Shown here: piece by piece, positions 1 through 3,283 of the stretch
How positions within the stretch are numbered: position 1 is the first letter of the stretch
Layout of the letters: every line of letters begins with the position of its first letter
IMG/VR virus record: IMGVR_UViG_3300031787_007614
Coordinates: 1-64,000 of that record
Reading direction: 5' to 3' (one strand)
DNA length: 64,000 bases
Notes under the pieces: generated by a model
Database searches by the model: none
What the model was told of the DNA's origin: nothing
Seen by the model: only the letters and a program-made list of their open reading frames with translations
Translations under genes and position numbers: made by a program

Positions 1-3
1 TTC

Positions 4-153
4 TATAGTCAAGCACCGAGAGATGCTCAATTTATGCGTCCTCCGCTAAGAGTGCAATAGCCGATAGCAGTTATATTAGGATCCGTTCCCGGCCGGTTGG
101 ACCCGAATAGCGTAAGCGTCCTTACACGATACCTTTATCGGTGCTTGACTATA
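4..153 (-). ncRNA. Unassigned structured RNA (A) closed by a 16-bp stem
   Basis: TATAGTCAAGCACCGA (4-19) is the perfect inverted repeat of 138-153. Internal hairpins (GTAAG/CTTAC, GGGTCC/GGATCC) and G-U pairs mostly favour the minus strand. No ORF; lies in the tRNA operon. Confidence 0.6.
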
Positions 154-183
154 AAAACTAAAAGTTCGGATTTGAAAATCAAA

Positions 184-600: not shown

Positions 601-693
601 TGAGGCATCATGTGGGATTCGAACCCACGCAAGAAAACCTTGATGATCATTCAAGGTTGAAGCAAACCACACTCCGTTACATCCTATGACGCC
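601..693 (-). ncRNA. Non-canonical tRNA-like RNA 1
   Basis: 8-bp acceptor GGCGTCAT/ATGATGCC, T-arm GTGGG-TTCGAAT-CCCAC, 8-bp hairpin with loop ATGATCA, no clear D-stem, ends TCA. Confidence 0.6.
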
Positions 694-700
694 ATAAACT

Positions 701-791
701 TGGTGGACAACAATGGGAATCTAACCCACTTCTTCCTCGTATGCTATTACGAAGTTTCATACCAGCCTCAGGTAATTGACACATCATGTCC
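701..791 (-). ncRNA. Non-canonical tRNA-like RNA 2
   Basis: GGACA.../...TGTCC acceptor ending ACCA, T-arm GTGGG-TTAGATT-CCCAT, hairpin CTTCGTA/TACGAGG, no canonical D or anticodon arm. Confidence 0.6.
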
Positions 792-798
792 ATAAACT

Positions 799-873
799 TG
801 GCGGTCCCAGGGGGTAACGATCCCCCTCCTCAGCAGTGACAGTGCTGTGTGCGTCCATGAACACCTTGAGACC
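799..873 (-). tRNA. tRNA-Asp(GTC)
   Basis: Full cloverleaf, anticodon loop CT-GTC-AC, G73 and encoded CCA; atypical T-loop ATCGTTA. Confidence 0.9.
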
Positions 874-1076: not shown

Positions 1077-1151
1077 TGGTAGAGCGTAGGGGAATCGAAC
1101 CCCTCTTACAGGCGTGAAAGGCTTGTGTCCTAACCGATAGACGAACGCTCC
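1077..1151 (-). tRNA. tRNA-Glu(TTC)
   Basis: Cloverleaf, anticodon loop CT-TTC-AC, T-loop TTCGATT, CCA end. Confidence 0.93.
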
Positions 1152-1157
1152 ATAGTT

Positions 1158-1392
1158 CACTATATGAAAACACATTAGGGAAGTTCTTGACACGCATCAC
1201 CAACTTGCATCAAGACCTCATTACAGGCCCAGTAGTTCCGCCGCCTTCCTGGAGTTTGGTGTAGCCTTATCCCTCACGCTCGATGGTGTCTCGCGCTACT
1301 CTTAGGCCCTCCTGCTTCATGGGTATCCGGCTCGAATCAGCCTTTGTTCACCCCTAACGGACTAGGTAACCCTAATGTGTTTACATATAGTG
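1158..1392 (-). ncRNA. Unassigned structured RNA (H) closed by a 23-bp stem
   Basis: 1158-1180 and 1370-1392 are inverted repeats with one mismatch; GC-rich interior with TCTTGA/TCAAGA and GTAGC/GCTAC stems. Confidence 0.6.
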
Positions 1393-1486
1393 CCCAGAAC
1401 TTAATCTGGGGCACTATACAAAATTAAATTTTTAACGAACTTCAAAGTAGTTTCGATCAACTGCCTTTGTTTTCTAACTAGTCTCT

Positions 1487-1515
1487 AGTATAGCATCTCC
1501 TGCTTTACTGGTCAA
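1487..1515 (-). promoter_or_regulatory. sigma70 promoter, RNA operon (proximal)
   Basis: TTGACC-17-TATACT with extended TG. Confidence 0.75.
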
Positions 1516-1669: not shown

Positions 1670-2560
1670 TTAGAACTGTACGACCAACCCGCCTGCTACT
1701 TGTTTGACATCAGTGGCTGCTGAGGTTCCCTCAACTGTACGATACAAAACTTGTGCATAGGTCTTTTTGCTGAAAGCATACTCAGCACCTACGTTGTAAC
1801 TCTTGATGCCATTTTCAATGCGACCATAGCTGGCCTTCACTGTGACTGGTCCACCAAGTTTGTGTGCCACGCCGACCAACTGAGCACGGTTGGTGTTGGC
1901 AGCAACGCCTTTGTTGTCGCTTGCGCTGGCAAACACAGTGGTTGCACCAAATTTAGCACGAGCAGCCAACACGTCACTGGTTTCTGCGCCAGCTTCGTAA
2001 CGAGCATAAGTCAACACAGCAGGTCCAACTGCGGCAATCACGGATGCGGCATAAGGATCAGCGGCAGTGCCAACAGCACCAGTGCTACGATCAAAGTTAG
2101 CAGAGACATTGCCAAAGTTCACAGAAGTGAAAGCGGCATTGCTCAAACGCAAACCACGCAGGTTATGCACGTCGGCAGCTGAGCTACCAATCAATGTGCC
2201 AAATGGATCATTGTCGCTGATGGCCAAGAAGTGAGTGTGAACATTGCGACCAAGATCAACGCTACCCATTTTGTGAGCAATACCCACGGTGCTTTGGCGA
2301 TCGCCAAGTCTAGTGTCAGTACCAGTGTCTGGGCTGTTGGCTTGGATGCCGGTCTCGTATGTGGCACGAGCTGTTAATCCGCCACCTAAGTTTTCAGTAG
2401 CACGAATGCCAAAGTGACTCAAGTCATTGGCCATGCCTTGCACGGTGGAAGCACCAGTTTTGGTGTTGTCAAGGTAAGTGCCAACACGACCATAGATACC
2501 AACTTGTGCGCTTGCAACACCAGCAACTGCCAGGGTCAACGCAATTAGAACTTTCTTCAT
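1670..2560 (-). CDS. Gram-negative general porin (Betaproteobacteria-type)
   Basis: Signal peptide, N-terminal V.IYGRV, S.FGIR..E.LGGGL, Y.FSKKT, C-terminal Phe. Confidence 0.9.
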   Translation of the reverse strand: MKKVLIALTLAVAGVASAQVGIYGRVGTYLDNTKTGASTVQGMANDLSHFGIRATENLGGGLTARATYETGIQANSPDTGTDTRLGDRQSTVGIAHKMGSVDLGRNVHTHFLAISDNDPFGTLIGSSAADVHNLRGLRLSNAAFTSVNFGNVSANFDRSTGAVGTAADPYAASVIAAVGPAVLTYARYEAGAETSDVLAARAKFGATTVFASASDNKGVAANTNRAQLVGVAHKLGGPVTVKASYGRIENGIKSYNVGAEYAFSKKTYAQVLYRTVEGTSAATDVKQVAGGLVVQF

Positions 2561-2608: not shown

Positions 2609-2638
2609 ATTATATAGCACAAACACTGAGAATGTCAA
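2609..2638 (-). promoter_or_regulatory. sigma70 promoter of porin
   Basis: TTGACA with downstream TATAAT-like box. Confidence 0.6.
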
Positions 2639-2640
2639 AG

Positions 2641-2666
2641 AAAATGGCTACTTTCGCAGCCATTTT
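2641..2666 (-). terminator. Terminator after tmRNA
   Basis: AAAATGGCT-GCGAAAGT-AGCCATTTT. Confidence 0.75.
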
Positions 2667-2826
2667 GGTGGTTTCTGTTACGAGGTATTTCCTACCCTAG
2701 ACGACCTTAAGCGGCCATCAAGAATTTTTCATCATTTGCAGATAAAAGTTTTGCTTGATTTACGGTCATCGCCTACCGTGCTGTCCACTCTGTTACTCTT
2801 TGCCCTGTCGAATCTAGGTCAGGCCC
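2666..2826 (-). ncRNA. ssrA: tmRNA, two-piece: piece with 5' acceptor strand and tag ORF ANDEKFLMAA* (2707-2739)
   Basis: Starts GGGCCTGA-CCTAGATTCGAC; tag reading frame ends in AA-stop. Confidence 0.92.
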
Positions 2827-2839
2827 ATCATAAAGAAAC

Positions 2840-2917
2840 TTAATCTACGCTTAATGTTGTTAACAACAAGCATAATATTGGAAAAACAATTAATAAAAAT
2901 TTTGCTAAATTTTCCAT
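2840..2917 (-). CDS. 25-aa hydrophobic micropeptide in tmRNA intervening segment
   Basis: MENLAKFLLIVFPILCLLLTTLSVD*; start is 1 nt after the upstream micro-ORF stop. Confidence 0.45.
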   Translation of the reverse strand: MENLAKFLLIVFPILCLLLTTLSVD

Positions 2918-2918
2918 A

Positions 2919-3029
2919 TTACCATAACTCACAGTTTTTTATTTTCTCTTCGTCCAATGTGGTATCACGTGTAAAATAAAATACACCAAACACTAACCAA
3001 AATAACAAAAATAAAACATAACCTATCAT
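2919..3029 (-). CDS. 36-aa single-TM micropeptide in tmRNA intervening segment
   Basis: MIGYVLFLLFWLVFGVFYFTRDTTLDEEKIKNCELW*; RBS AAGGAAG just upstream. Confidence 0.55.
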   Translation of the reverse strand: MIGYVLFLLFWLVFGVFYFTRDTTLDEEKIKNCELW

Positions 3030-3041
3030 TAAACTTCCTTA

Positions 3042-3108
3042 TGGTGGACCTGGGGGGATTCGCACCCCCGTCCAGAACACTTTTCTCTCGGCTTCATACA
3101 GCAATAAC
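3042..3108 (-). ncRNA. ssrA: tmRNA, two-piece: piece with T-arm and ACCA end (transcribed first)
   Basis: GGAC-GGGGG-TGCGAAT-CCCCC-CAGGTCC-ACCA; pairs with GGGCCTG giving the G3-U70 Ala identity. Confidence 0.92.
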
Positions 3109-3112
3109 TCGC

Positions 3113-3141
3113 AGTATATATTTATTCTTTGGGCTTGTCAA
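3113..3141 (-). promoter_or_regulatory. sigma70 promoter of tmRNA
   Basis: TTGACA-17-TATACT. Confidence 0.8.
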
Positions 3142-3283
3142 CTGCTTTGGAGATGATGTCATACACTTGTGCGTATGCATCAGTAATTTTGTCTAGTTGT
3201 TGTTCCGACACCAAGTCTGTGTCCTCCAGACTGACCAAGTCTCGGGCTAGATTTTCTTGTAGTTTTTTTATGGGATTGAGCAC
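3122..3283 (-). CDS. Hypothetical protein, 53 aa (GTG start)
   Basis: Manual translation VLNPIKKLQENLARDL...; ATAAATA motif upstream. Confidence 0.5.
   Translation of the reverse strand: MLNPIKKLQENLARDLVSLEDTDLVSEQQLDKITDAYAQVYDIISKAVDKPKE

Follow-up and report, generated by a model that had tools for sequence, protein, structure and literature searches.

Conserved genes for tRNA-like RNAs without an anticodon in a tRNA operon of a metagenomic phage

Positions 601 to 791 of the IMG/VR virus record IMGVR_UViG_3300031787_007614 hold two adjacent genes for conserved, structured tRNA-like RNAs, which lie in a tRNA operon and lack an anticodon. The window that was analysed (64,000 nucleotides) is the first 64 kb of this 364,404-bp phage record, which has direct terminal repeats. 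An earlier note, made from the letters of the window, had described a tandem pair of tRNA mimics with acceptor and T arms, but with neither a normal D arm nor a normal anticodon arm, and had taken the two for elements of one common architecture. The elements do stand in tandem. However, they are not copies of one thing, but members of two unrelated families, here termed type 1 and type 2, and the covariance model of the first family (R1) does not match the second element.

The decisive evidence for both RNAs is conservation with covariation, whereas single-sequence folding is weak evidence. The two elements fold only mildly better than shuffled sequences (z = -2.5 and -1.1), and the case therefore rests on relatives. 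These bear out the view that the elements are not products of random decay, but conserved functional tRNA mimics: in each family, 10 base pairs have changes on both sides, and in neither is the observed covariation score reached by any of 500 shuffles. The elements and their parts are as follows.

601-693, minus strand: type 1 tRNA-like RNA gene (117 bits with the R1 covariance model, against 15-35 bits for ordinary tRNAs)
693, minus strand: G at position -1 of type 1
686-692, minus strand: 5' strand of the type 1 acceptor
676-685, minus strand: invariant type 1 junction AGGAUGUAAC
659-675, minus strand: type 1 hairpin A
636-658, minus strand: type 1 hairpin B, loop AUGAUCA
629-635, minus strand: type 1 linker UUCUUGC
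612-628, minus strand: type 1 T arm
605-611, minus strand: 3' strand of the type 1 acceptor
604, minus strand: type 1 discriminator C
601-603, minus strand: 3' terminal UCA of type 1
701-791, minus strand: type 2 tRNA-like RNA gene (115.9 bits with the R2 covariance model)
788-791 and 705-708, minus strand: type 2 closing stem, GGAC with GUCC
777-786, minus strand: type 2 mini-hairpin
760-774, minus strand: type 2 hairpin A, loop UGAGGCU
735-754, minus strand: type 2 hairpin B, loop AUAGCA
712-730, minus strand: type 2 T arm, loop UUAGAUU
704, minus strand: A73 of type 2
701-703, minus strand: 3' terminal CCA of type 2

Structure and distribution of the two families

A custom scan for minihelices of acceptor and T arm led to a homologue of type 1 in the viral contig L028, in which the helices have changed relative to the window copy and the part formerly considered "unpaired" has not. 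With subsequent pattern scans of IMG/VR and of JGI metagenomes, the family now comprises 23 distinct sequences from tRNA arrays of uncultured phages, the window copy included. The R1 model assigns 93-117 bits to the members of the family and at most 35 bits to ordinary tRNAs. Across the alignment, 94.8% of the cells in paired columns are paired, and this value falls to 36-51% in controls with slid partners.

Type 1 is a four-arm cloverleaf. In its consensus, a 7-bp acceptor is followed by the near-invariant 10-nt junction AGGAUGUAAY, a D-like 5-bp hairpin with the loop GYGG(U)UU, an 8-bp hairpin in the position of the anticodon arm with the conserved base AACC/GGUU, the near-invariant linker UUCUUGC, the T arm GUGGG-UUCGAAU-CCCAC, the discriminator, and finally CCA, which terminates 21 of the 23 distinct sequences. 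The tip of the hairpin in the anticodon-arm position (hairpin B) is occupied by 10 different loops of 4-7 nt. Since these vary freely, type 1 has no anticodon and cannot decode. The junction itself reads AGGAUGUAA (676-685, minus strand), a Shine-Dalgarno-like AGGA followed by AUG and UAA, which is taken as a coincidence in view of its position in the tRNA core. A mini-tmRNA reading of this start and stop codon is ruled out by geometry, because the junction lies beside the acceptor stem and far from the codon-reading site. The AUG of the junction (680-682) also repeats the AUG at 609-611, and both are complementary to the CAU at 686-688, so that an alternative pairing is possible.

Type 2 relatives were collected with two pattern scans, and the structure obtained with RNAalifold agrees with our own model. 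The 15 distinct sequences, which come from tRNA arrays of uncultured phages and are all 90-91 nt long, adopt a five-way junction in which the closing stem has 4 bp, and 98.1% of the cells in paired columns are paired. The consensus consists of the closing stem GGAC/GUCC, a 3-bp mini-hairpin, a 4-bp hairpin with the loop UGAUGCU, a 7-bp hairpin with the loop AUAGCA, and a T arm of 5-6 bp. The T loop is UUAGAUU in most members, and UUUGAUU or UUCAAUU in distant ones, whose stem covaries. The loops UGAUGCU and AUAGCA and the 3' end GUCCACCA are invariant or nearly so, and the terminal ACCA is invariant. The two conserved loops are mutually complementary (AUGCU/AGCAU), which suggests a loop-loop contact, for which loops so close to invariant give covariation no test.

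These structures confirm a good part of the architecture that had been read from the single sequences, and correct the rest. Both elements have an acceptor-like stem and a 5-bp T stem starting with GUGGG, with 7-nt T loops (UUCGAAU in the arm at 612-628, UUAGAUU in the arm at 713-729), and they end in UCA (601-603) and ACCA (701-704), respectively, as described. The combination of acceptor, T arm and NCCA is thus represented in type 1 by a 7-bp acceptor, a 5-bp T stem and CCA, and in type 2 by a T arm, ACCA and a closing stem of 4-5 bp. The acceptor strands of 8 nt per side need qualification. In type 1 they form 7 bp, and the eighth pair (-1:73), with which the arms would have the 8 + 5 bp layout of tRNA-Sec and of 8+5 allo-tRNAs, is optional, since it is formed in 17 of the 23 relatives (G-C in 8, U-A in 5, U-G in 4) and mismatched in the other 6. 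In type 2 only the 4-5 bp of GGAC(A)/(U)GUCC remain, the other 3 nt being part of the mini-hairpin. The stretch of about 28 largely unpaired nt that had been assigned to each element does not exist as such, because it holds hairpins supported by covariation. In type 1, it contains the 5-bp hairpin at 659-675, in which an A-U pair (10 sequences) alternates with a G-C pair (13 sequences) across the relatives. In type 2, it contains the 3-bp mini-hairpin and the 4-bp hairpin, both with compensatory changes. Type 1 lacks a conserved anticodon, and the loops of type 2 either are 6 or 8 nt long or contain no U33.

As expected for such elements, ARAGORN in default mode calls neither of them, and there is no credible call in intron or mitochondrial mode either. 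At thresholds of 70-80%, ARAGORN forces folds of tRNA-Leu(CAA) and tRNA-Tyr with poor stems. The Rfam tRNA model (RF00005) reaches 20 bits on type 1 (604-692), below its gathering score of 29 bits, and does not match type 2. A tRNA-Sec-like identity was considered and rejected for both, as the traits of tRNA-Sec (UCA anticodon, 6-bp D stem, long variable arm) are absent from both consensus structures and the tRNA-Sec model has no match.

Neither family appears to have been described before. A blastn search of 50,697 GenBank phage records did not match either element, so that no cultured phage is known to carry either family. A pattern scan of one genome per prokaryote species found no type 1, and 24 type 2 matches, about the number expected by chance, none of which is recognised by the R2 model. 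In Rfam 15, searched at the gathering threshold and with E values up to 10 (stretches down to 271 nt), there were only the sub-threshold tRNA match and a tmRNA match confined to the T arm, and literature searches on phage tRNA-like or anticodon-less RNAs turned up neither family. Among 28 related records, only this phage and contig L069 have both families, L069 with type 1 and type 2 in the opposite order, and the tRNA neighbours of both types differ between arrays. Type 1 without type 2 is found in near-complete phages of 164 kb and 340 kb, and type 2 without type 1 in a complete phage of 79 kb.

There are also further tRNA-like elements that are missed by ARAGORN and have intact acceptor and T arms. 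One is located in L069 after its type 1 and type 2 elements (+192..+276, counted from type 1), two are at L020:4470-4550 and L020:4926-5008, and one of 87 nt is in Bordetella phage PHB04 (L003:2431-2521, minus strand). These elements suggest that there are further families of this kind. The PHB04 element, a weak tRNA-Sec match with an 8-bp acceptor and no CCA, was rejected as a member of either family described here, and a long hairpin is the better fold for its region.

Putative alanine identity and likeness to known RNAs

The third acceptor pair of type 1 is a G3:U70 wobble in 20 of the 23 distinct sequences. The neighbouring pair takes all four Watson-Crick forms (U-A in 14, A-U in 5, C-G in 3, G-C in 1). 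In a 7-bp acceptor helix with NCCA, G3:U70 is the main determinant for alanyl-tRNA synthetase (AlaRS) and suffices even in minihelices, and the charging of transfer-messenger RNA (tmRNA) with alanine depends on it as well. Among tRNAs called by ARAGORN in the same phage loci, the wobble is present in 14 of 14 tRNA-Ala genes and in only 6 of 448 others. The feature set of an AlaRS substrate (G3:U70 in a 7-bp acceptor helix together with NCCA) is found in type 1, in 20 of the 23 sequences. The conserved wobble leads to the prediction that type 1 may be charged with alanine, which we consider plausible, if somewhat short of an even chance. The corresponding pair in the acceptor-like stem of type 2 is A3-U70. 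The suggestion that the elements could be aminoacylated thus finds indirect support for type 1 only.

Canonical tRNA-Ala, of which the phage also has a normal copy with UGC anticodon, shares with type 1 the 7-bp acceptor, G3:U70, NCCA and the T loop UUCGAAU. Unlike tRNA-Ala, type 1 lacks both an anticodon and a normal D arm, and carries a 10-nt insert. The tRNA-like domain of tmRNA resembles both elements in its acceptor, which stacks on a T arm, in its CCA end and in the lack of an anticodon, and type 1 alone in the G3:U70 pair. In contrast to tmRNA, both elements are devoid of a messenger part and of pseudoknots, have extra D-like and anticodon-like hairpins, and are only 91-94 nt long. The Rfam tmRNA models match just 18 nt of the T arm (12.6 bits, against a threshold of 47 bits), and membership of the elements in tmRNA is not supported.

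The closest analogues of the pair known to us are RNAC and RNAD of phage T4 (also called species 1 and 2), which are likewise small non-tRNA RNAs in tandem, encoded on the same strand as a phage tRNA cluster and immediately behind its final tRNA (RNAD, then RNAC after tRNA-Arg, L088 2909-3172). RNAC moreover ends in a tRNA-type T arm, CCGGG-UUCGAAU-CCCGG, beside a terminal stem, as do both elements of the window. The likeness is one of arrangement and not of homology: R1 scores 17.3 bits on rnaC, the level of unrelated tRNAs, and finds nothing in rnaD. With 139 and 119 nt, the T4 RNAs are also longer than the elements here (91-94 nt), their CCA is not encoded, and no G3:U70 was noted in them. 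The roles of RNAC and RNAD are still unknown (PMC3014915, PMC9697503).

A relation to YrlA, the Y RNA bound to Ro/Rsr, had also been proposed. YrlA shares with both elements a tRNA-like module of acceptor, T and D arms in a small RNA that does not decode. The elements differ from it in their encoded CCA end and in their location in a tRNA operon, match no Rfam family, and come from a phage without a Ro/TROVE or RtcB gene, and the proposed relation is not supported. The tRNA-like RNAs of murine gammaherpesvirus 68 and mascRNA are encoded by a virus or a transcript, tRNA-shaped, matured by tRNA enzymes, CCA-bearing and non-decoding, and reported not to be aminoacylated. They are eukaryotic and have no sequence relation to the phage elements, and the parallel is one of analogy only.

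Transcription unit, proposed action and alternatives

The phage has 30 tRNA genes and a two-piece tmRNA, all on the minus strand in a single cluster that spans the ends of the genome. The tRNA set covers 20 of 20 amino acids, and both elements are therefore supernumerary. Of the 30 tRNA genes, roughly two dozen were detected by the custom scan for acceptor and T arms, and all of these encode CCA. The 1.6-kb stretch around the two elements contains no overlapping open reading frame (ORF) longer than 72 amino acids. On the minus strand it comprises a promoter-like site, a 335-nt leader, tRNA-Glu, a 203-nt module, tRNA-Asp, a spacer, type 2, a spacer, type 1, and about 600 nt of noncoding DNA. 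The features that flank the pair are the following.

1487-1515, minus strand: sigma-70-like promoter TTGACC-17-TATACT with TG before the -10 box (a match to the consensus only)
1077-1151, minus strand: tRNA-Glu(UUC), CCA encoded, first tRNA of the presumed transcription unit (ARAGORN/Rfam)
799-873, minus strand: tRNA-Asp(GUC), CCA encoded, directly upstream of type 2 in the presumed shared transcript (36.2 bits with the Rfam tRNA model)
792-798, minus strand: spacer AGUUUAU between tRNA-Asp and type 2 (read from the sequence)
694-700, minus strand: spacer that separates type 2 from type 1, again the heptamer AGUUUAU (read from the sequence)

The promoter-like site is likely to be the start of one unit, to which tRNA-Glu, tRNA-Asp, type 2, type 1 and the RNAs further downstream belong. 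U-rich spacers like AGUUUAU are also present in related phage arrays. The T loop of the tRNA-Asp gene, AUCGUUA, departs from the usual UUCRANY pattern, and the Rfam tRNA model gives this gene no more than 36 bits.

In the reading that we favour, both RNAs would be co-transcribed with tRNA-Glu and tRNA-Asp and excised by host tRNA-processing enzymes, by RNase P at the 5' end and by trimming or CCA repair at the 3' end. The tRNA-operon location and the encoded CCA end are what is expected for RNAs processed by RNase P, as had been proposed for them. After maturation, type 1 and type 2 would fold into tRNA-shaped bodies, and type 1 would most likely be charged by the host AlaRS, in the same way as the tRNA-like domain of tmRNA. 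Since neither RNA can read a codon, both would most likely act through a protein that binds the tRNA body or the acceptor end, which they would either occupy or supply. Candidate partners are a host tRNA-targeting enzyme or defence that would be titrated, or an enzyme that uses an aminoacyl-tRNA, such as Ala-tRNA. Action in decoding appears unlikely for either RNA. Taken as a whole, this sequence of steps is in our view somewhat more probable than not, whereas any single named partner protein is much less so. A more specific version is doubtful: type 1 could be a free-standing, alanine-charged, non-decoding tRNA body that feeds or jams a host protein acting on Ala-tRNA or on acceptor ends, type 2 could be an independent mimic with a partner of its own, and the pair and the five or more other conserved modules of the island could together make phage tRNA arrays a reservoir of undescribed functional RNAs.

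A number of observations speak against the favoured reading. With respect to alanine charging, G3:U70 is replaced in 3 of the 23 type 1 sequences (by G-C in 2 and A-U in 1), the 2:71 pair of type 1 is C-G, and the discriminator is A in 11 sequences, C in 8 and G in 4, and thus C or G in 12 of the 23. A discriminator other than A, a C-G pair at 2:71 and the loss of G3:U70 all lower the efficiency of alanine charging. The window copy of type 1 and one other lineage end in UCA instead of CCA. The 4-bp closing stem of type 2 may be too short for the standard acceptor-end enzymes. With respect to partners, the phage genome lacks genes for AlaRS, SmpB, a CCA-adding enzyme, Ro/TROVE and RtcB, as well as for three families of transferases that depend on aminoacyl-tRNA, namely FemAB, aminoacyl-phosphatidylglycerol synthase and L/F-transferase. 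Since all partner genes that were sought are absent, no partner can be read from the genome. With respect to expression, metatranscriptome contigs include the type 1 and type 2 modules and their relatives. However, these data are assembled contigs from RNA libraries with low depth over both elements, for which DNA carry-over is possible, and the contigs provide no usable RNA ends for either element.

Two alternatives deserve to be weighed, although each has only a small chance of being correct. The first is that the elements are pure processing punctuation, tRNA-shaped cleavage signals comparable to the t-elements of plant mitochondria or to mascRNA, which would serve to release the neighbouring structured RNAs. 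Both elements are indeed located between tRNAs and other conserved non-tRNA modules in a single noncoding island, and shuffling has moved whole modules, with CCA and a U-rich spacer as their boundaries. However, a minihelix of acceptor and T arm would do for this purpose, and the 10-nt junction, the 7-nt linker and G3:U70 of type 1 and the invariant loops of type 2 would be left unexplained. In many arrays, ordinary tRNAs adjoin the elements and already provide cleavage sites.

The second alternative, which we rate no higher than the first, is that the elements are decoys or sponges for host defence toxins that target tRNA on the acceptor side. It would account for the retention of a tRNA-like body with a CCA end in both families. 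Yet neither a defence system nor a target could be identified, and a stoichiometric decoy would have to be very abundant, whereas the depth in RNA libraries is low. A decoy function against anticodon nucleases, as suggested in the earlier note, does not fit the structures, because type 1 has no conserved anticodon loop, which excludes these nucleases as its targets, and the loops of type 2 have 6 or 8 nt or are without U33.

It is very unlikely that the tRNA-like domain of tmRNA has a free-standing relative in type 1, one that would bind SmpB and act on, or compete for, stalled ribosomes. Type 1 does have G3:U70, a CCA end and no anticodon, the phage carries a two-piece tmRNA, and in a direct reading the junction GGAUGUAACGG loosely resembles GAUUCGACAGG, the tmRNA analogue of the D-loop. 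However, the T-arm match at 12.6 bits is all that the tmRNA models recognise, neither pseudoknots nor a reading frame are present, the phage has no SmpB gene, and the D-like and anticodon-like arms fill the place that SmpB would take.

Unconventional decoding tRNAs, such as suppressors or quadruplet readers of odd shape, are hardly credible. The loop of type 2 hairpin B can be read as 8 nt (AAUAGCAU), its sole variant exchanges UAG for CAG, both of which are leucine anticodons, and one related contig carries an amber-suppressor tRNA. Against this, the candidate loop of type 1 varies in length and in sequence, those of type 2 either are 6 or 8 nt long or are missing U33 and a purine at 37, tRNAs for all 20 amino acids are already present, and the ORFs of the window are long and dense under translation table 11, without a sign of an altered code. 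The amber-suppressor tRNA is a tRNA with a CUA anticodon at +209..+285 after the type 2 element of contig L077, and is labelled tRNA-Pyl by ARAGORN.

Decaying tRNA pseudogenes, that is, functionless leftovers of duplicated tRNA genes, can practically be dismissed as well: the Leu-like and Tyr-like folds that ARAGORN forces at very low threshold and the UCA end of type 1 in the window would fit, but both elements are kept in many phage contigs with different neighbours, with compensatory changes in the helices and near-invariant unpaired segments, no relative has a canonical tRNA that resembles them and could be the source of degenerate copies, and the next-best R1 matches are generic tRNAs of at most 35 bits. 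The differing flanks and the 10 pairs with double changes also argue against near-identical copies of one recent element.

The surrounding RNA island and the phage

Phage tRNA clusters are usually read as helpers for codon usage or as spare parts against tRNA-cleaving defences. In the region described here, such a cluster is seen to include conserved RNAs as well, which have retained the body of a tRNA and given up decoding. The T4 RNAs have been unexplained for about 50 years, and the new families bring dozens of natural variants and clear consensus structures to this question. Should type 1 prove to be charged, it would represent, apart from tmRNA, a new class of RNAs that are aminoacylated and do not decode.

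The surrounding 1.5 kb or so are a mosaic of conserved, unannotated structured RNAs. Apart from the pair, the island consists of conserved noncoding modules with 74-93% identity in other phage tRNA arrays.

1-165, minus strand: multi-hairpin RNA of about 155 nt with an 18-bp closing stem (42 predicted pairs, 17 with compensatory changes), recurring in at least 10 other phage loci
166-329, minus strand: conserved structured RNA of about 155 nt (42 predicted pairs, 17 with compensatory changes), context rather than part of the pair
335-600, 874-1076 and 1152-1486, minus strand: three noncoding modules with 77-93% identity in other phage tRNA arrays, where their orders differ

The RNA at 166-329, which has no Rfam match, contains the core GUCCUAUCCCAAGGAUCACC, a 20-mer that is found in 27 viral stretches and in the cultured Bordetella phage PHB04. 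In some places it is located between tRNAs, and in others it follows an ORF and precedes a ribosome-binding site. The 203-nt module (874-1076) is missing in some relatives, in which 873 is joined to 1076. In metatranscriptome variants, 593/598 is joined straight to 781/798, and the pair of type 1 and type 2 is therefore missing as one unit. Contig depth in estuary and marine metatranscriptomes is highest at 343-570.

The phage itself is known only from lake and freshwater metagenomes: the DNA runs that hold the window are labelled mainly in this way, and four are labelled as fungus metagenome. Between the tmRNA and the tRNA-Glu unit lies an ORF of 296 amino acids (1670-2560, minus strand) with a Gram-negative porin domain (Porin_4, E = 2.8e-25). 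A synteny search that started from this gene led to nothing but identical copies of this phage and two short tRNA-free contigs, in which the ORF has 87-88% identity. The two-piece (permuted) tmRNA at 2616-3155 on the minus strand is of the betaproteobacterial type (111.5 bits, tag ANDEKFLMAA), and its intervening segment is about 194 nt longer than the model. Elsewhere in the phage genome, at 359297-359388 on the minus strand, there is a tRNA-Ile(UAU) with a long extra arm, which is unusual for an isoleucine tRNA. In a length of 90-92 nt, it recurs in the arrays of contigs L020, L066, L068, L069, L074 and L083.

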